Shown one piece after another: positions 3,328 through 10,414 of a stretch of 64,000 nt of DNA. The position numbers and the translations under genes were made by a program. Every line of letters starts with the position of its first letter. Position 1 is the first letter of the stretch. The notes under the pieces were generated by a model. That model was not told the DNA's origin and did no database searches. It was given only the letters and a program-made list of their open reading frames with translations. Source of the DNA: Bacillus subtilis subsp. subtilis str. 168 (GTDB lineage Bacteria > Bacillota > Bacilli > Bacillales > Bacillaceae); assembly GCF_000009045.1 (NCBI RefSeq), contig NC_000964.3, positions 4,092,001-4,156,000 of the forward strand, in the 5' to 3' direction.

Positions 3328-3357
3328 AAAAGGCGCTTCCTTAGAGGAGCGCCTTTT
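3328..3357. terminator. Bidirectional terminator aldX/yxbD
   Basis: AAAAGGCGCTTCC...GGAGCGCCTTTT inverted repeat. Confidence 0.8.
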
Positions 3358-3835
3358 ATTGTAACTCCTTGACCAAAAGCAATTCATCACGGATAGGTAT
3401 TTTATTATCTGCCAGTAAAGGAATTTCGGGCTTCATCTTTCTGGCCGTCTCGACTGCATTCACAAATAGTCGATCCAACCGGTACCCTCTCTTCTGATAA
3501 AACGCTAATGCATGAATATTATCATTGGTTGTGATCAGTTTTATTTGTTTGATATTTCTCTCTCTGCATGCTTCCTCGGCTTTCTCTAGCAGAGCTGTTC
3601 CGATCCCTTTATTCTCAATGACACTATCCAGCGAAATGATTTCACAGGCATCTTCTTCAAATATGTATGTAATAAGGCCAACAATCTGGTTATCATCGTT
3701 GAGCATTCCATAACCATCTAATTCATCGCAGTTATAAATACCGCTAGAAATAACCATTTGCGGACTGCCCCAGTGTTTTTGAAAAAACGCGGAAACAAGA
3801 TCTTTAGGTACCTGGCATGTCGGAATAATATTCAT
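3356..3835 (-). CDS. yxbD: GNAT-family N-acetyltransferase
   Basis: Acetyl-CoA motif (ENKGIGTALL) and NIHALAFYQKRGY; GGAGG SD. Confidence 0.88.
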   Translation of the reverse strand: MNIIPTCQVPKDLVSAFFQKHWGSPQMVISSGIYNCDELDGYGMLNDDNQIVGLITYIFEEDACEIISLDSVIENKGIGTALLEKAEEACRERNIKQIKLITTNDNIHALAFYQKRGYRLDRLFVNAVETARKMKPEIPLLADNKIPIRDELLLVKELQ

Positions 3836-3914
3836 ATTTTCCTCCTTTTAGCTGAACAAAAATAAGAGAATTAACAACCTATTTTATGTCATTAATCCCC
3901 TTATCTAGTATTTA

Positions 3915-4907
3915 CTAGAACTTATAACTTGTCAAAAGCTGTCTGAATACCAATTGCGTGGATTGATAAGGATCAAAATCTGAATCCTGAGATTGGAAGA
4001 TTTGCTCTGGGGTCAATGTCTCTGCGTTCTCTGATAACGTTTGAATCAGACTTTCCAAATATCCATTTAACTCTGATTTGGACGATTCATGTAGGGATTG
4101 ATGATTTACAGCGAGTTCTCTAAATCTGTTATCACTGATTAATTTTTTTCGAAGAGCTGCTAGCATCAAGTCAAGCCATGCAGGCTGGCCAAATGTAATA
4201 TTTAAAGCTAACGTTGCTTGATCAGATTTGGTGGAGTGCCATAAACCTCTTGGCAAATACAGCATGGTTCCCGGTGTTAAATTAACGATTTCTGCATCTG
4301 GCAGATCCTCTTTTGGCGGATCTCCTTTCCAATATGACTGTAAATCATCAGGATAGTAAGGAGCCTCTGATAAATCATAGTGCTGCATTGGATTGCTCAC
4401 ATTTTCATTCTTGGCAAGCTTCCATGTTTTCTCACCTTGAATTTGAAAAATCAAGTTGGTGTAGGCGTCAAAATGGGCTTTGAATCCCCCGCCATTTTTC
4501 GCCGCGTAAACAATGGCTTTGGAAGAAGTACCCGCAGGCAGTCTTAATTCCGCTTTGAGTTTTTCTATCCACCTTCTGACTTGGGGAATAAATAGGTCGG
4601 TGAAATCAAACTCTAATGCAGCCCCTTTTTCATACCACTCTAAAGCCTCTGCAGGTGACACAAGAAATCTGTCTGTGATCCCTTCAGATTCTTCAATCAC
4701 AGCATCACCAACGACCATGACTGGATTATTGTAGATAGCCAATACGTTTTCTAGCGTTCTAACCTTTTCAAACCCCGGTATGCTTGTAAATCTCTCCACT
4801 TCTCCTCTGGCTACCAAAGGTTTTACAGGCCAATATTCTTCTAAAAACTCACTCATCGTTACAGGACTGATGATAGACTCCAAAACCGATTCGGTTACAG
4901 CACTCAT
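3915..4907 (-). CDS. yxbC: JmjC/cupin 2-oxoglutarate-Fe(II) oxygenase
   Basis: HFD...WH facial triad (AHFDAYTN; PRGLWHST) and LTPGTMLYLPRG. ATG at 4907 follows a GGGAGG SD. Confidence 0.88.
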   Translation of the reverse strand: MSAVTESVLESIISPVTMSEFLEEYWPVKPLVARGEVERFTSIPGFEKVRTLENVLAIYNNPVMVVGDAVIEESEGITDRFLVSPAEALEWYEKGAALEFDFTDLFIPQVRRWIEKLKAELRLPAGTSSKAIVYAAKNGGGFKAHFDAYTNLIFQIQGEKTWKLAKNENVSNPMQHYDLSEAPYYPDDLQSYWKGDPPKEDLPDAEIVNLTPGTMLYLPRGLWHSTKSDQATLALNITFGQPAWLDLMLAALRKKLISDNRFRELAVNHQSLHESSKSELNGYLESLIQTLSENAETLTPEQIFQSQDSDFDPYQSTQLVFRQLLTSYKF

Positions 4908-4971
4908 ATTATCCCTCCCAAAAAAAGTAACTTCACCACAAAGATATAACATTTTTTTCTAAAAGTAAATA

Positions 4972-5000
4972 TTGACAGAATTATCAGAGGATTATAATAT
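4972..5000 (+). promoter_or_regulatory. SigA-type promoter for the peptide-yxbB-asnH transcript, overlapped by a CodY-like box
   Basis: TTGACA at 4972-4977. TATAAT at 4993-4998 (15-bp spacer) or TAATAT at 4995-5000 (17-bp spacer). AATTATCAGAGGATT at 4979-4993 matches the CodY consensus AATTTTCWGAAAATT at 12/15. Confidence 0.65.
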
Positions 5001-5048
5001 TTAGTTGTGCGTGATAGCCTATTTTTTTACAAGGAAGGAGGGAAAAGG

Positions 5049-5117
5049 ATGAAAAAGGCTTATAAGAAACCTCGTCTTTTTGAACTGCGCCGTGCTGTAG
5101 CAGCTGGCGGCCATTAA
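5049..5117 (+). CDS. 22-aa putative RiPP precursor, copy 1: MKKAYKKPRLFELRRAVAAGGH
   Basis: AAGGAGG SD, ATG...TAA, YxxPxL motif. Too short for the ORF track; translated by hand. Confidence 0.82.
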   Translation: MKKAYKKPRLFELRRAVAAGGH

Positions 5118-5166
5118 TCTCATATAGCATTTGACATCTAGTACTCTATTTTAGGAGGGATGCTCA

Positions 5167-5235
5167 ATGAAAAAAGCTTATAAGAAACCTCGCCTTTTTG
5201 AACTGCGCCGTGCTGTAGCAGCTGGCGGCCATTAA
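5167..5235 (+). CDS. 22-aa putative RiPP precursor, copy 2 (identical peptide)
   Basis: AGGAGG SD 8 nt upstream. Differs from copy 1 only at synonymous sites (AAG>AAA, CGT>CGC). Confidence 0.82.
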   Translation: MKKAYKKPRLFELRRAVAAGGH

Positions 5236-5284
5236 TCTCATATAGCATTTGACATCTAGTACTCTATTTTAGGAGGGATGCTCA

Positions 5285-5353
5285 ATGAAAAAAGCTTATA
5301 AGAAACCTCGCCTTTTTGAATTGCGCCGCGCTGTAGCAGCTGGCGGTCATTAA
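5285..5353 (+). CDS. 22-aa putative RiPP precursor, copy 3 (identical peptide)
   Basis: AGGAGG SD. Differs from copy 2 only at synonymous sites (CTG>TTG, CGT>CGC, GGC>GGT). Confidence 0.82.
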   Translation: MKKAYKKPRLFELRRAVAAGGH

Positions 5354-5415
5354 TCTTATCCAAAACGATTAACGTTTGAGGCTATCACGCCAACTTGATA
5401 AGGAGGATGCTGAAG

Positions 5416-6150
5416 ATGATTACGGCTGAAGAATGCAGAACGTACAAAGAATTTGTTGATCTTTACCAATCCTATCTTTACCCCTTGCTTGGCGCCAGAC
5501 TGTCCCGGATGTATTCCCCCAAAAACAAAGTCATTATCGATATGGGCACAGGTCCAGGTTATTTAAGCATTCAGTTGGCTAAAAGAACAAATGCGCACGT
5601 GCATGCTGTCGATATTAACCCGGCCATGCATGAAATCGCTCAAGAAGAAGCTAAAAAAAGCGGAGTAAGCAGCCTGATTTCATTTGATTTGGAAGATGTC
5701 CACCATTTATCTTACGCTGACCAATATGCTGACTTCATCGTCTCCTACTCTTGCCTGCATCATTGGGAAGACGTTGTTAAAGGACTTAAAGAGTGCTATA
5801 GAGTTCTGGCTCCGGGCGGAAAAATTGTCATTTTGGATACATTTAATCCCCAAGGAAGCCATTTAGAGATTATGCGAAAACAAATCAAAGAACCGGAATA
5901 CTTCAGGTTTGTAAGAGAGGCATTTGAAGAAAGTTATTCCTTTGAAGACATTCACCAGTTTGTTCAGGATGCCGGCATTCCCAATTATTCATTAGAAACC
6001 TTTCACTTTTTACCGGAGGATTTTATAGAAAGCTTAGATGAGCTGGAGGATGCTCCCCTGTGGGAACAAAATGATCAAAGTACTGATCATGAAATTGAGT
6101 CTGTCACATGGATGTTAACGATAGAAAAAGAAAAGGAAGGTGCATTGTAA
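5416..6150 (+). CDS. yxbB: Class I SAM-dependent methyltransferase
   Basis: Motif [37 protein letters not shown]; AGGAGG SD at 5401. Confidence 0.9.
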
Positions 6151-6419
6151 TGATCAATGAATCAACTGTTTTATCCAAAAATCCAGAAATGCCATCAAGA
6201 AAATATTTGAAAAGCATTATTATAGAGCCGGGCATCACTTTAAATGAAATGGCATCAGATATTTATAACCATATCGACGGCAAGGTCAGCATACATGATA
6301 TTTGCTCAAAAATCGTCAATGAATATGATGTTGATTATCAAACCTGCTTAGAAGATTGTATGGAGCTGTTTGAGTTGCTTATTGATCATGAAGCAATCAA
6401 AGTTAAGCAGGGGGCATGA
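6150..6419 (+). CDS. yxbA: PqqD-family / RiPP recognition element (RRE) protein
   Basis: 89 aa with the PqqD-type pattern [31 protein letters not shown]...[12 protein letters not shown]; start overlaps the yxbB stop (TAATG). Confidence 0.82.
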
Positions 6420-6422
6420 GAA

Positions 6423-6905
6423 TTGGAAAAACAAAAAGTGCTTGCTTTACCAGACGATGTACATGAGCTGAGTACACACCGTTCTAAATCAATCGTAAAT
6501 TACATCATCACTCTGCTTGCCTTTGCCAAAAAACAAGGATTGACTCATCAAGATATTGTAAGCTGGATTCACGAGCAATATGAGGAAAGAGGATATTATG
6601 ATGAGTGGAGACACATTAACAGCCAACAACCAGTTGGATCATTTGTGGAACTCTTTATAAAAGGAAGACGTTTACTTTATGACAAAATTGAATTGTTTGA
6701 AACAGAAGATAAATATGTCGTAAATACCCACACTTGGTATGAAAAAGAACCTAGTGAGGCCTTTTTTTATTTTGAAATTGATCCCGAAGAATTTTCTGCG
6801 TACGCTTCCATTCTCGCAATCGAAAACGCAAAACGTCTCGGAATTAAAATCGATATTGTAAAAGAAACAGATGTAGAGACAGCTTATATCTATAAACATC
6901 AATAA
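6423..6905 (+). CDS. yxnB: Uncharacterised 160-aa protein
   Basis: TTG-start ORF in the operon between yxbA and asnH; no motif recognised. Confidence 0.8.
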   Translation: MEKQKVLALPDDVHELSTHRSKSIVNYIITLLAFAKKQGLTHQDIVSWIHEQYEERGYYDEWRHINSQQPVGSFVELFIKGRRLLYDKIELFETEDKYVVNTHTWYEKEPSEAFFYFEIDPEEFSAYASILAIENAKRLGIKIDIVKETDVETAYIYKHQ

Positions 6906-6925
6906 CGCTATTGGGAGGGAGACAT

Positions 6926-9169
6926 ATGTGCGGGCTCGCGGGTATTATAAATCTGGCTGCTCCCCGTTCTCAGGAATGTACCTTTCATATATTGAAAGGC
7001 ATGGCAGATGCCATCAGCTATAGGGGACCGGATGATGAACAATATCATATTGATTCCAAAGTCGGCTTTGCATTTCGGCGATTGTCCATTCTTGACCTTG
7101 TAAATGGACAGCAGCCCTTTTTAAATGAGGATGGATCAATCGTCGTTATGGTAAATGGAGAAATTTATAACTATAAAGAACTGAAGGCTTCTTTACACAA
7201 TCATATGTTTAAAACGACATCTGATTGTGAAGTAATTGTTCATTTATATGAAGAAAAAGGGATTGGATTTGTAGACGACATCATCGGAATGTTTTCAATA
7301 GCCATTTGGGACAAAAATAAAAACAAAGTATTTTTAGTTCGTGACCGCTTTGGGATTAAACCGCTTTTTTACACAGAGCTAAAACACGAGCTTATATTTG
7401 CCTCTGAAATAAAATCCCTATTTTCTCATCCTCACTGTCCCCGCCAATTTAATTGGAAAGAAGCACTCTCAGACATTTGGCTAAGCGGGGAAGCAGCCAG
7501 TAATCATAAAGAAACCACTTCCTTTTTTGTAAACATCCAAAATCTCGATGCTGGCCATTATCTCGAAATTAATTTGACAACAAATGAACGAAAAACAGCA
7601 AGCTATTGGTCTTTACAGGATATTTTGCTCAGGCAAGGCTATCGTGAGAATCTCCATCCCGATGACCTGATTGAAGGATATAGAGAACTGCTGGCAGATT
7701 CAGTCCATAGATGTTTACAAAGCGACGTTGAAGTCGGGTTGTTTCTTAGCGGTGGCATTGATTCAGCTGCAGTCGCACATTTTGCTGCAGAAAAACAGGA
7801 TCTCCATACGTTTACAGTATTAAGCCAAAGTACATTTACAAATGAAGATGCAAAATATGCCCATTGGCTGGCTAAAGATTTACACCTTCCAAATCATCAG
7901 GTTCTCTATCAATTAGGGAACGATGAGTTATTACAACCAGAGTCATATAAACATTTGTTATGGATCTGTGAAACACCGTTTTGCGGACCGGAACAATTAT
8001 ATAAGTTTCATTTACATAAGTATGCCAAAGCGATAAGGCCAAACCTGAAAGTCATGCTGACCGGCCAGGGCAGCGACGAATTTAACGGCGGTTACAGCAC
8101 GACACTTTCACCAGCCGAGAACCCAAGTTGGGAAGGATTTATTGAATCGGTCAATACGATGGAGATGAACCGGCTGCATCGGCTGCAGGGAAATATCTTT
8201 AGAGTGTGGGAGGAGCATTTTGGACTTTCTCCTATAAACCTTTCTTATTTAAAGAGCAATGATTCCAGCCAAGCAGATCCTTGGCAATCGTATGTCCTGA
8301 CAAAATACCGTGATCTGCAAATGTATAATTGCTGGCATGAAGATCGGATCGCCGCGGCTAATCATATCGAAAACCGTGTACCGTTCTTGGACCATCGGCT
8401 TGTTGAATGGGTTTGCGGAATACCTGATGGACTCCGTAAAGACTTGTTATGGGATAAGTCGGTATTGCGAAAATCATTAACAAATGAGCTGCATACAAGC
8501 TATACCCACCGGCCAAAGGTTCCTTTTTTCTATGGTAAGGACGTGAGATATACACATAAAATGATGTTTCATCTTCTGAAGAAAAACAATTATCAGCTTA
8601 TAGAGGAGGCCTTCTCTCACAGCGATGCCTCCAGCATAATACAGGTTGAACACATTCATGCCATCATGACATATTTGGAGGATGATCCTGAGTTTACAAA
8701 TTTTGAATTTTTATTAAGACTGGTGAACATGGGACTTTTATCAAAAATGACTAAAGAAACCCCTTCTGTTCAATTAGACATAACCAGCCATTTAGAATCG
8801 ATAACAATAAAAGACTGGCACTCACAGGAAGGTGATATTGCCAGTCGTTTAAATATCTCAGCCAATAAGTGTGAAGGACAAGATATTTTGGCGCTAAACC
8901 CTGGCGTCACTCTGTTAAGGCCGGAAAGCGATAGTGAGCATTGCATCTACATTGCGGAAGAAGGATTTATTCAGTTTATTGTTTCGGAGGAAGACGTCGG
9001 AGCTTGGCTGCATATTCTCTGCGATATTAATGGAAAAGACACACTTCATACGATTTTAGACAGACATGGTGTCAGCCTTGAAGAAGTGGCCAAATATATT
9101 CAAGAAGCCATCGAACACAATATCATTTTGATCAAACAAAAAAATCTGCCAGAAGGAGCATATAGATGA
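6926..9169 (+). CDS. asnH: Glutamine-hydrolysing asparagine synthetase-like amidotransferase with C-terminal extension
   Basis: N-terminal MCGLAG (Ntn Cys), RGPDD, PP-loop LSGGIDS, TGQGSDE; GGGAGG SD. Confidence 0.93.
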   Translation: MCGLAGIINLAAPRSQECTFHILKGMADAISYRGPDDEQYHIDSKVGFAFRRLSILDLVNGQQPFLNEDGSIVVMVNGEIYNYKELKASLHNHMFKTTSDCEVIVHLYEEKGIGFVDDIIGMFSIAIWDKNKNKVFLVRDRFGIKPLFYTELKHELIFASEIKSLFSHPHCPRQFNWKEALSDIWLSGEAASNHKETTSFFVNIQNLDAGHYLEINLTTNERKTASYWSLQDILLRQGYRENLHPDDLIEGYRELLADSVHRCLQSDVEVGLFLSGGIDSAAVAHFAAEKQDLHTFTVLSQSTFTNEDAKYAHWLAKDLHLPNHQVLYQLGNDELLQPESYKHLLWICETPFCGPEQLYKFHLHKYAKAIRPNLKVMLTGQGSDEFNGGYSTTLSPAENPSWEGFIESVNTMEMNRLHRLQGNIFRVWEEHFGLSPINLSYLKSNDSSQADPWQSYVLTKYRDLQMYNCWHEDRIAAANHIENRVPFLDHRLVEWVCGIPDGLRKDLLWDKSVLRKSLTNELHTSYTHRPKVPFFYGKDVRYTHKMMFHLLKKNNYQLIEEAFSHSDASSIIQVEHIHAIMTYLEDDPEFTNFEFLLRLVNMGLLSKMTKETPSVQLDITSHLESITIKDWHSQEGDIASRLNISANKCEGQDILALNPGVTLLRPESDSEHCIYIAEEGFIQFIVSEEDVGAWLHILCDINGKDTLHTILDRHGVSLEEVAKYIQEAIEHNIILIKQKNLPEGAYR

Positions 9170-10365
9170 GCATCTTTTATTCGTTTTCCGCACTTAGGGG
9201 ATTAGCAATGGGGATTTTTTCGCCTATTTGGATTCTTTATCTGATATCTAAAGATTATGATTTCCTTCAGATTGGATTAATGGGAGCGGTACTTGAAATT
9301 GCTAAGCTTATATTTGAAGTTCCTTCCGGCGTTTTTGCTGATCGTTATGGAATTAAAATTTCAATTGCCAGTTCATTCTTTTTCTCCATCCTTACATGGG
9401 CCTTCTTCCCTTTTATCGATTCAGCTGCTATTTGCATACTGGCTATGATCATATGGGCTTTATCAGATTCCTTAATTTCCGGTTCTTTTGAAACTTGGAT
9501 GAGCCGTGTCGCAGGGGAAGATCGATTCGGCAAAGAAATGATGAAAAACACACAATTGCTAATCACTTTTTTAATTATTGGAAGTATTGCCAGCGGGTAT
9601 TTGTATTCATTAAATATCTATTTTCCTTTCCTGCTCGTTATGGTGATCTACTTATTACTATTTATTTGGATGTCTGTATTTATTAAAGTCCCTTCTGTTT
9701 CCGAAACAAATCATGGGGATCAGAACCAACATGATTCGATAAAGATTATCAAAGAAAGTTTAAAAATTATCTTTAACAAAAAAAGGGTTCTTTTAATCGT
9801 CATAGCCGGTTTCTTTACAGCCACAGCCTATGACACAATTTCCCGTTACTGGCAGCCTTTTTTGAGTGATTTAGGCTTTTCAGAAAAGTCACTGGGATAT
9901 ATTTTTGCCCTAGGAGGGTTTACCGCTCTCGTTCTTTTGACATTAACCATCAGGTTCGAAAAGAAGATCGAAAAAAATCCATATCTCGCTTTAACCTCAT
10001 TGGATTCCATGGGCATGGTCATGACTTTTCTATTGTCTAGAGCATTCAGGCCGCTGGGCATTCCATGTACAGCGTTTTTGCTTGCAATTGAAGATATTCA
10101 TCATCCGATCGTAACAAGTTACTTAAATAAGTTTTTCCCCGATTCATACAAGAACACACTTTTCTCGTTAAACTCAGGGGTAGGAGCAATTGGAGAAATT
10201 CTTTCCGGTGTCATTTTCGGCATCATTTCCGCAGCCTTTGGGCTCTCTGCCATGTTTGTTGTTGTAGCTGTATTTCTATTAATCCCTATTATCCTTTATA
10301 CGATAGTGCCTAAGATTAAAGACAATGATATGAAAGTTCAGATTGAAAAATCCCAGCAAGTGTAA
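9166..10365 (+). CDS. yxaM: MFS efflux transporter
   Basis: Many hydrophobic segments; MFS motif A-like GVFADRYGIK; overlaps the asnH stop (ATGA). Confidence 0.88.
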   Translation: MSIFYSFSALRGLAMGIFSPIWILYLISKDYDFLQIGLMGAVLEIAKLIFEVPSGVFADRYGIKISIASSFFFSILTWAFFPFIDSAAICILAMIIWALSDSLISGSFETWMSRVAGEDRFGKEMMKNTQLLITFLIIGSIASGYLYSLNIYFPFLLVMVIYLLLFIWMSVFIKVPSVSETNHGDQNQHDSIKIIKESLKIIFNKKRVLLIVIAGFFTATAYDTISRYWQPFLSDLGFSEKSLGYIFALGGFTALVLLTLTIRFEKKIEKNPYLALTSLDSMGMVMTFLLSRAFRPLGIPCTAFLLAIEDIHHPIVTSYLNKFFPDSYKNTLFSLNSGVGAIGEILSGVIFGIISAAFGLSAMFVVVAVFLLIPIILYTIVPKIKDNDMKVQIEKSQQV

Positions 10366-10383
10366 ATGTTTTGTATCACAGTA

Positions 10384-10414
10384 AGAAGACCTTCTTATTA
10401 AAAGAAGGTCTTCT
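10384..10414. terminator. Bidirectional terminator yxaM/yxaL
   Basis: Perfect 13-bp stem AGAAGACCTTCTT/AAGAAGGTCTTCT. Confidence 0.8.

Follow-up and report, generated by a model that had tools for sequence, protein, structure and literature searches.

A triplicated 22-residue precursor and an asparagine-synthetase-like enzyme in the asnH operon of Bacillus subtilis: a probable pathway for C-terminal peptide modification

Two recently described enzymes, both from work of the van der Donk laboratory, show what asparagine-synthetase-like (AS-like) proteins can do to the C-terminus of a peptide. FzmA belongs to the AS-like enzymes and has, fused to its C-terminus, a recognition element (RRE) of the kind that serves ribosomally made peptides modified after translation (RiPPs), and its partner FzmZ is a 22-mer peptide with a YxxP motif (Cha et al., bioRxiv 2026, PMC13622209). 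As described in that preprint, FzmA turns the C-terminus of FzmZ into a hydrazide, amide or hydroxamate, after which a methyltransferase methylates the new nitrogen, and FzmA relatives co-occur with discrete PqqD RREs (79%), with major facilitator superfamily (MFS) transporters (54%) and, in some cases, with phosphoenolpyruvate mutase (PepM). With glutamine and two ATP, PesC takes the C-terminal carboxylate of a peptide first to the amide and from there to the nitrile, and its authors state that no sequence feature predicts nitrile over amide formation (Cha et al., JACS 2026, PMC13060819). Here we compare with these systems a locus from a 64,000-nucleotide stretch of the Bacillus subtilis subsp. 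subtilis str. 168 chromosome (NC_000964.3, positions 4,092,001 to 4,156,000; hereafter the window, with positions counted from its first letter). Positions 3356-10414, which include the asnH operon, probably constitute a biosynthetic gene cluster whose product is either a ribosomal peptide modified after translation or a small molecule built on a peptide scaffold. Work on this operon, which dates back to 1999, has treated it as one for asparagine synthetase with a curious triplicated leader, and neither B. subtilis AsnH nor the peptide described below is mentioned in the FzmA and PesC papers, their supplements or other searchable text.

Between the promoter and yxbB, a 118-bp tandem unit is present three times (Tandem Repeats Finder, 97% matches). 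Each unit carries a 22-codon open reading frame (ORF), the ATG starts lying at 5049, 5167 and 5285:

5049-5117, plus strand: precursor gene copy 1, encoding MKKAYKKPRLFELRRAVAAGGH
5167-5235, plus strand: precursor gene copy 2, encoding MKKAYKKPRLFELRRAVAAGGH, a peptide identical to that of copy 1
5285-5353, plus strand: precursor gene copy 3, encoding MKKAYKKPRLFELRRAVAAGGH, a peptide identical to that of copy 1

A sequence-only reading of this DNA had drawn attention to the first of these ORFs. Its description of the peptide is accurate: for the ORF starting at ATG 5049 the Tyr codon is at 5061, residues 5-10 are Y-K-K-P-R-L, there is no Thr and E12 is the sole acidic residue. The triplication was absent from that reading. 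On its own the Y..P motif is within chance, as about ten other short ATG ORFs in the 64-kb window have an N-terminal Y..P. That the ORFs are real is instead supported by three other features: the codon differences among the three copies, all of which are synonymous (5/5), the GGAGG ribosome-binding site found 7-10 nt upstream of each copy (3/3), and the conservation of the peptide in seven other loci. Judged by these patterns of change, the 22-residue ORFs are real genes under purifying selection. Such precursors are missed by gene callers, being only 22 codons long, unannotated and below ORF filters of at least 30 aa.

Related loci were recovered through homologues of YxnB and AsnH. Seven of them carry a Gly-Gly-His precursor, and there is in addition a decayed locus (L014/L015). 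The enzymes encoded in the related loci are only 35-59% identical to their window counterparts, and the precursors are as follows:

L001, three copies: precursor MKKAYKKPRLFELRRAVVAGGH
L004 (B. thuringiensis), one copy: precursor MKKEYKQPRLFELRRAIVAGGH
L005 (high-GC Firmicute), one copy: precursor MKKQYKKPRLLELRRAVVAGGH
L010 (low-GC), one copy: precursor MKKAYKTPKVVVIRNANITGGH
L013, one copy: precursor MKKVYKAPRLVEIRNAVIVGGH
L017 (B. altitudinis), three copies: precursor MKKVYKTPRLVEIRNVVVAGGH
L009, positions 65-265, one copy: 66-aa precursor ending ...LGLYRKPRLVAISSDLAVGGH
L014/L015 (decayed locus), L014 positions 8932-9142 and L015 positions 4104-4314: 22-mer MKRLYKKPKAVAVGLTVAAGAH, with a Gly-Ala-His end

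Both ends of the peptide are kept. Y-x-x-P-[RK]-[LV] and a C-terminal Gly-Gly-His are found in all eight distinct precursors (the window and the seven loci), and the spacing between them is constant, the C-terminal His standing 17 residues after the Tyr even in the 66-residue form. Synonymous changes dominate the peptide codons between loci (10 versus 1 for L001, 9 versus 3 for L005), and a GGAGG site is present at every precursor copy compared, relatives included. E12, on the other hand, is not conserved: L009, L010 and L014 have V or A in its place. Asp and Glu are both missing from the L010 and L014 peptides, which leaves the C-terminal carboxylate as the sole one open to an adenylating enzyme.

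Two of the relatives depart from the common form. In L009 the N-terminal extension ends ...EMEVISGG, resembling a double-glycine export leader, and is followed by the YRKPRL...GGH module; as the Tyr-to-His spacing behind this extension is identical, the module may work as a portable C-terminal unit. In L014/L015 the PqqD gene is cut to 42 codons and no AS-like gene lies nearby, while the 22-mer still has its ribosome-binding site; this is apparently a decaying version of the cluster. A search of 185,579 species-representative genomes with the YxnB profile and a degenerate DNA pattern for the peptide, YKxP[R]L[FL]EL[R][R]A, returned zero matches. Since the locus is present in B. subtilis and B. 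altitudinis, this collection probably masks or lacks the region, and the missing matches are no sign of rarity. Among metagenome contigs the peptide pattern matched only the window sequence (L008), L001 again (L006) and L007, the last of which we rejected as a chance match inside a 243-aa ORF.

The segment that holds these ORFs has already been described as RNA. It was listed as a 420-nt 5' untranslated region with 617 cDNA reads (Irnov 2010, PMC2965217), and on that count the leader with its three ORFs is very abundant. A 'long sequence triplication', the same DNA as the three 118-bp units, has been given an RNA-stabilising role under AbrB/CodY control (Morinaga et al., Microbiology 2010, cited in PMC9319509). 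Within the searchable literature, which does not extend to the text of Morinaga 2010 itself, no paper reads the triplication as precursor genes or contains the peptide sequence. It could thus be argued that the segment is a non-coding, mRNA-stabilising 5' leader, that AsnH is a third asparagine synthetase of primary metabolism, and that the ORFs and the PqqD gene are incidental. We consider this improbable. The elements that bear on it, here and in the related loci, are these:

4972-5000, plus strand: sigma-A-type promoter (TTGACA, 17 nt, TAATAT), 10/12 matches in a promoter scan
4979-4993, within the promoter spacer: CodY-box-like AATTATCAGAGGATT, 3 mismatches
5009-5020, plus strand: 5' arm of a closing stem, a 12-nt perfect inverted repeat with 5379-5390
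5379-5390, plus strand: 3' arm of the closing stem, just upstream of the yxbB ribosome-binding site
L001, 3304-3316 with 3667-3679: bracket stem
L004, 1624-1632 with 1767-1775: bracket stem
L010, 1328-1336 with 1451-1459: bracket stem
L017, 6256-6269 with 6610-6623: bracket stem

The CodY-box match is not significant alone (7 matches found versus 9.5 expected), and it agrees with the reported binding of CodY to the asnH operon promoter (PMC6200986). The closing stem appears in both the minimum-free-energy and the centroid folds, and its 5' arm lies at the predicted transcript start, so that the stem would close at the extreme 5' end of the transcript, as a stabilising leader might. The whole leader fold is no more stable than that of shuffled sequences (z = -0.63), leaving the closing stem alone as notable, and the leader has no match in Rfam. 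In five divergent loci the precursor array is flanked by a perfect long-range inverted repeat of 9-14 nt; because the arms differ in sequence at each of them, the structure of the stem covaries. L005 and L016, the latter a Streptomyces locus, have a local hairpin just 3' of the precursor gene instead. The bracket stem probably underlies both the published RNA stabilisation by the triplication and the excess of leader over downstream reads.

A stabilising stem does not make the segment non-coding, however. Coding and RNA stabilisation are compatible, since mRNA is protected by a 5' stem and also by ribosomes sitting on Shine-Dalgarno sites. In loci with one copy and no triplication (L004, L005, L010 and L013) the peptide is conserved too, most of the codon changes being synonymous, and a canonical ribosome-binding site stands before every copy. 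Moreover, the PqqD RRE, methyltransferase, JmjC, GNAT and MFS proteins encoded alongside have no role in asparagine synthesis.

The sequence-only reading had also left out AsnH, the key enzyme of the cluster:

6926-9169, plus strand: asnH, a glutamine-hydrolysing asparagine-synthetase-like enzyme (GATase_7 and Asn_synthase)
8885-9136, plus strand: RRE-like C-terminal domain of AsnH, approximately residues 654-737

The MCG N-terminus with Cys2, R52, N77-G78-E79, D100 and the SGGIDS PP-loop of AsnH are invariant in five distant cluster homologues, pointing to a working glutaminase site and a working adenylation site. AsnH passes the glutamine-hydrolysing Asn-synthase model TIGR01536 (asn_synth_AEB; 361 versus 267 bits), fails the lasso-cyclase model NF033535 of NCBIfam (190 versus 525 bits), and has as its best PDB match the hydroxyamidotransferase 7YLZ (E 1e-47). 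The pass on asn_synth_AEB fits a primary-metabolism enzyme, as does earlier genetics. In 1999 Yoshida is said to have named AsnH an asparagine synthetase, plasmid-borne asnH reportedly having complemented an E. coli asparagine auxotroph; the asnH deletion, however, reportedly gave no growth phenotype, which does not favour a primary-metabolism role. The operon is still described as possibly asparagine-making (PMC8002186). Against such a role also stands the extra C-terminal domain of about 110 aa, which AsnH has in common with the FzmA-type peptide-modifying enzymes.

In the AlphaFold2 (AF2) model these approximately 110 extra residues form four beta-strands followed by three helices, with a core predicted local distance difference test (pLDDT) score of 85-89. 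The domain aligns weakly with the YxbA family (hhalign E 5e-4, probability 31%). Foldseek matches are also weak (E at or above 0.07) and include the RRE-bearing proteins MibB, TbtB, ThcOx, MccB and McbBCD, and Pfam gave sub-threshold winged-helix matches only. We call the domain RRE-like with moderate confidence, and it may be the main reader of the YxxP motif. One homologue, P0167, looked at first like proof of a PqqD-type domain; we rejected it because its Pfam PqqD match falls in an additional domain beyond the AsnH-type C-terminal domain.

Since AS-family members can also form lactams (PMC13622209, discussion), AsnH might instead be a cyclase, joining the adenylated C-terminal carboxylate to the N-terminus or to the amine of Lys2, Lys3 or Lys6 to give a macrolactam. 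The partial match to the lasso-cyclase model is in keeping with this, as are the lysines themselves, with Lys 2, 3 and 6 kept in all eight 22-residue precursors and an Arg at the Lys6 equivalent in the 66-aa L009 precursor. Yet the glutaminase residues (Cys2, R52, N77, G78, E79 and D100) are invariant across distant homologues, and cyclases and beta-lactam synthetase are not known to need a glutaminase domain. Furthermore, the nearest characterised relatives (FzmA, the 7YLZ hydroxyamidotransferase and PesC) transfer external nitrogen nucleophiles. Cyclisation is in our view an unlikely function for AsnH, and we keep to nitrogen transfer at the peptide C-terminus.

A full-length AsnH search returned a large clade of 720-770-residue enzymes from Firmicutes, Actinobacteria and other phyla (98-100% coverage, 38-59% identity). 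One of them, from Streptomyces (L016, GCA_003248355.1), is 41% identical to AsnH end to end and is encoded beside PepM, phosphonopyruvate decarboxylase, a nucleotidyltransferase, an MFS transporter and PqqD. An unannotated 22-codon ORF in the same cluster (7853-7921), encoding MKKYIKPQVKKVSFGSVLSNVA, begins with MKK..Y..P as the Bacillus peptides do, a sign that the precursors of Bacillus and Streptomyces may be homologous across phyla. Precursors of 22 residues are thus present in the window (three), L001, L004, L005, L010, L013, L017 and the Streptomyces locus. A Brevibacillus locus (L018), whose AS-like enzyme is 45% identical, was considered as a further relative and set aside, as its gene context is different and it has no clear YxxP precursor.

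The remaining genes of the cluster encode a putative tailoring and export set:

3356-3835, minus strand: GNAT acetyltransferase gene, downstream of yxbC (Pfam Acetyltransf_1, E 1e-14)
3915-4907, minus strand: yxbC, JmjC/cupin Fe(II)/2-oxoglutarate oxygenase (Pfam JmjC_2), divergent from yxbB
5416-6150, plus strand: yxbB, class I S-adenosylmethionine (SAM)-dependent methyltransferase (Pfam Methyltransf_11, E 8e-25)
6150-6419, plus strand: yxbA, stand-alone PqqD-type RRE of 89 aa (Pfam PF05402, E 1.1e-10)
6423-6905, plus strand: yxnB, member of a small family and partner domain of GNAT, with no Pfam or NCBIfam match
9166-10365, plus strand: yxaM, MFS transporter and presumed exporter (Pfam MFS_1, E 7.5e-26)
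10384-10414, plus strand: intrinsic terminator at the operon end, a 13-bp stem followed by a T-rich tail

The methyltransferase, PqqD and YxnB (with or without GNAT) are present in every related locus, PqqD being shortened in L014/L015. An AS-like gene is found in L003/L004, L005, L009, L010 and L017, that is, in every non-degenerate contig that reaches its position, L001 and L013 ending earlier. A JmjC gene occurs in the window and in L001, L004, L009, L010 and L017, and an MFS gene in L003, L005, L010, L014/L015 and L017. The genes are tightly packed, the yxbB stop overlapping the yxbA start (TAATG) and the yxaM start overlapping the asnH stop. The methyltransferase gene is the first enzyme gene 3' of the precursors in all related loci except L014/L015, where it is on the opposite strand; YxbB itself scored above the cut-off of no NCBIfam model.

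YxbA exceeds the PqqD family threshold (42.2 bits against a gathering cut-off of 23.4 for PF05402), as the sequence-only reading had recognised in calling this 89-aa protein PqqD-like. In the relatives the PqqD gene overlaps or abuts the YxnB or YxnB-GNAT gene, and that of L017 also overlaps the methyltransferase gene, an arrangement which suggests that YxbA serves the tailoring enzymes. YxbC matches the PDB entries 1VRB/7ZCC, 'YxbC', over its full length (E ~1e-223); among characterised proteins it is closest to MINA53 and NO66, two ribosomal histidyl hydroxylases, and the H-x-D...H motif is kept in its orthologues. For CzlI, a hydroxylase of RiPP peptides, YxbC was reported as the first-ranking neighbour in structure (PMC11575548).

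YxnB was described in 2025 as unique in databases, with its function unassigned. An exhaustive profile search of 1.84 billion proteins found 53 representatives of its family, where a word-index search gave only 2, and neither Pfam nor NCBIfam has a matching model; YxnB is a small undescribed domain family. Its AF2 model is of high confidence (pLDDT 94), and a fold search of the PDB found no convincing neighbour, only designed proteins and weak H-NOX/Bet3-like matches (template modelling score at most 0.46). YxnB has neither an invariant Cys nor a protease-like fold. Seven longer members (321-345 aa; P0009, P0011, P0014, P0017, P0023, P0025 and P0034) were scanned and all seven are fused to a C-terminal GNAT, so that YxnB is probably, on this pattern of fusion, a substrate-recruiting partner of the cluster GNAT. 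The window GNAT shares 52% identity with that of the B. thuringiensis cluster (L003) and 38% with the GNAT part of the B. altitudinis YxnB-GNAT fusion (L017).

L005 carries a different set of genes. At 6029-7471 its PqqD gene is followed by a radical SAM/SPASM enzyme and a second methyltransferase, beside the precursor, the AS-like enzyme and the methyltransferase, and there is no JmjC gene on the 9.6-kb contig. This combination points to a tailoring route that would differ from that of the window on the same Gly-Gly-His scaffold.

Starting from the gene set, the coding status and conservation of the peptide and the homologies of the enzymes, we infer as follows how the RREs bind, where and how AsnH reacts, and what tailoring and export come after. 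We hold it likely that AsnH carries out an RRE-guided amidation or related nitrogen transfer on His22, followed by tailoring and MFS export. The three identical, highly expressed 22-residue precursors would present an N-terminal MKKxYKxP[RK][LV] recognition motif, which would be bound by YxbA, by the RRE-like C-terminal domain of AsnH, or by both. The fixed 17-residue Tyr-to-His spacing would deliver the C-terminal His22 to the synthetase site, where AsnH would adenylate its alpha-carboxylate, and nitrogen from glutamine or a glutamine analogue, freed at the Cys2 glutaminase site, would move to His22. The product would be a C-terminal carboxamide, possibly carried onward to a nitrile or another N-derivative. 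Methylation by YxbB, hydroxylation by YxbC and acylation by YxnB and the GNAT could then tailor the Gly-Gly-His end or nearby residues, and YxaM would export the product. As the cluster encodes no protease, general peptidases may trim the peptide, as for fosfazinomycin.

Several points weigh against this proposal. RNA stabilisation could be the main role of the triplicated segment. The RRE assignment of the AsnH C-terminal domain depends on weak hhalign and Foldseek scores. If the reported complementation of the auxotroph holds, free aspartate is to some extent a substrate for amidation by AsnH. The cluster has no hydrazine or hydroxylamine donor genes and no protease gene, the substrates given here to the methyltransferase, JmjC and GNAT enzymes are guesses, and no modified peptide from this locus has been reported in the searchable literature.

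Lasso peptide clusters (A, B1, B2, C) resemble this locus in three respects: the leader motif is of the YxxP(x)L type, there is a B1-like RRE of the PqqD type, and one enzyme belongs to the Asn-synthetase superfamily. Indeed, the best matches of YxbA are lasso B1 chaperones, both in NCBIfam (lasso_PqqD_Bac, 30 bits, below the 80-bit cut-off) and in the PDB (a lasso PqqD chaperone, E 0.046). The resemblance ends there. No B2 transglutaminase-like peptidase is found among the cluster proteins by Pfam or NCBIfam or in the seven related loci, the precursor has no Thr at -2, and there is no conserved Asp/Glu acceptor, E12 being unconserved and two relatives having no acidic residue at all. AsnH has a complete glutaminase site and scores far below the lasso-cyclase cut-off, as YxbA does for the lasso-B1 model. 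The invariant parts of the peptide are the leader motif and the extreme C-terminus, which appears to be the conserved target, and not a ring acceptor. We therefore rejected the assignment as a lasso cluster; at the level of sequence it is already refuted, and even an unusual but genuine lasso pathway is extremely unlikely.

In this the comparative data agree with the sequence-only reading, which had noted the missing B2-like protease, had argued that the core cannot form a lasso and had proposed that lasso-style leader recognition is reused here for different chemistry. The analogy with FzmZ and FzmA supports the last of these ideas, and a YxxP leader serving non-lasso chemistry is no longer unprecedented (PMC13622209). 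Its further suggestion of a core of 10 residues or fewer needs amending: the short segment ending in Gly-Gly-His stands, and the part acted on is probably the His carboxylate with a few nearby residues rather than a 10-residue core.

If these proposals are correct, the published 'RNA stabiliser' and 'asparagine synthetase' would both be recast, and the operon, with three precursor genes in its leader and an AsnH that modifies the C-terminus of their peptides, would become a testable natural-product pathway in a fully tractable laboratory strain. B. subtilis, better studied than any other Gram-positive bacterium, could then make a so far unseen product, in which Gly-Gly-His is amidated or nitrilated, hydroxylated, methylated and possibly acylated, and which is released as a small molecule or exported on the peptide; this we put forward tentatively, at somewhat less than an even chance. 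The product would be a small His- or Gly-Gly-His-derived molecule, or would leave the cell on its peptide. Because the tripeptide Gly-Gly-His is well known for binding Cu(II) and Ni(II), the product might bind metal; or it might be a protease inhibitor of the nitrile or amide type. The YxnB family would gain a function as a substrate-recruiting GNAT partner.

To conclude, we return to the described systems. Some features recall the cofactor pathways for pyrroloquinoline quinone (PQQ) and mycofactocin, in which a short precursor is used stoichiometrically with a PqqD-family RRE and the product is released, the mycofactocin chemistry taking place at the last residues; L005 adds the pairing of a PqqD gene with a radical SAM/SPASM enzyme. 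In the window, however, the key enzyme is an AS-like amidotransferase and not a radical SAM enzyme. The thiopeptide-type enzymes TsrC and ScdTA are alike in carrying out AS-like, glutamine-dependent amidation of a peptide C-terminal carboxylate, but as summarised in PMC13060819 they act late on heavily modified cores, with no 22-mer YxxP leader, no fused RRE and no PqqD/MFS/methyltransferase context. The nitrilobacillins made with PesC resemble the proposed product in that they are Bacillus-related RiPPs whose AS-like enzyme adenylates the C-terminal carboxylate and takes its nitrogen from glutamine, an iron oxygenase having first hydroxylated a neighbouring residue. PesC precursors, in contrast, end in R(V/T)DN and are recognised through a partner protein of the multinuclear non-haem iron-dependent oxidase (MNIO), and the PesC cluster, which includes M16 peptidases, lacks both a YxxP 22-mer and a PqqD gene.

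The likeness to FzmZ/FzmA and to 'cluster 58' goes furthest. In each a 21- or 22-residue peptide with an N-terminal YxxP lies beside the enzyme, and the enzyme, an AS-like protein some 740 aa long, keeps its glutaminase domain intact and has an RRE fused at the C-terminus, the RRE part being of moderate confidence for AsnH. A separate PqqD RRE (YxbA), an MFS transporter (YxaM) and a SAM methyltransferase gene are shared as well, the methyltransferase acting after the AS-like step in the fosfazinomycin pathway, and neither system has a dedicated protease. The likeness of AsnH to the FzmA type runs through the presumed clade member in the Streptomyces PepM/PqqD cluster, at 41% identity. In the window locus there are no genes for phosphonate or hydrazine formation and none for a kinase or nucleotidyltransferase, tailoring would fall to a JmjC oxygenase with YxnB/GNAT, the precursor gene is triplicated, and the nitrogen donor is probably plain glutamine; FzmZ ends in Val-Arg, whereas the window precursor ends in an invariant His after Gly-Gly. 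The AS-like/RRE/22-mer logic described in 2026 would in this way be extended from actinomycete phosphonates to Firmicutes, with another tailoring set and an invariant Gly-Gly-His end. The asnH system would extend a kind only recently recognised, the AS-like, RRE-guided C-terminal modification of short YxxP peptides.

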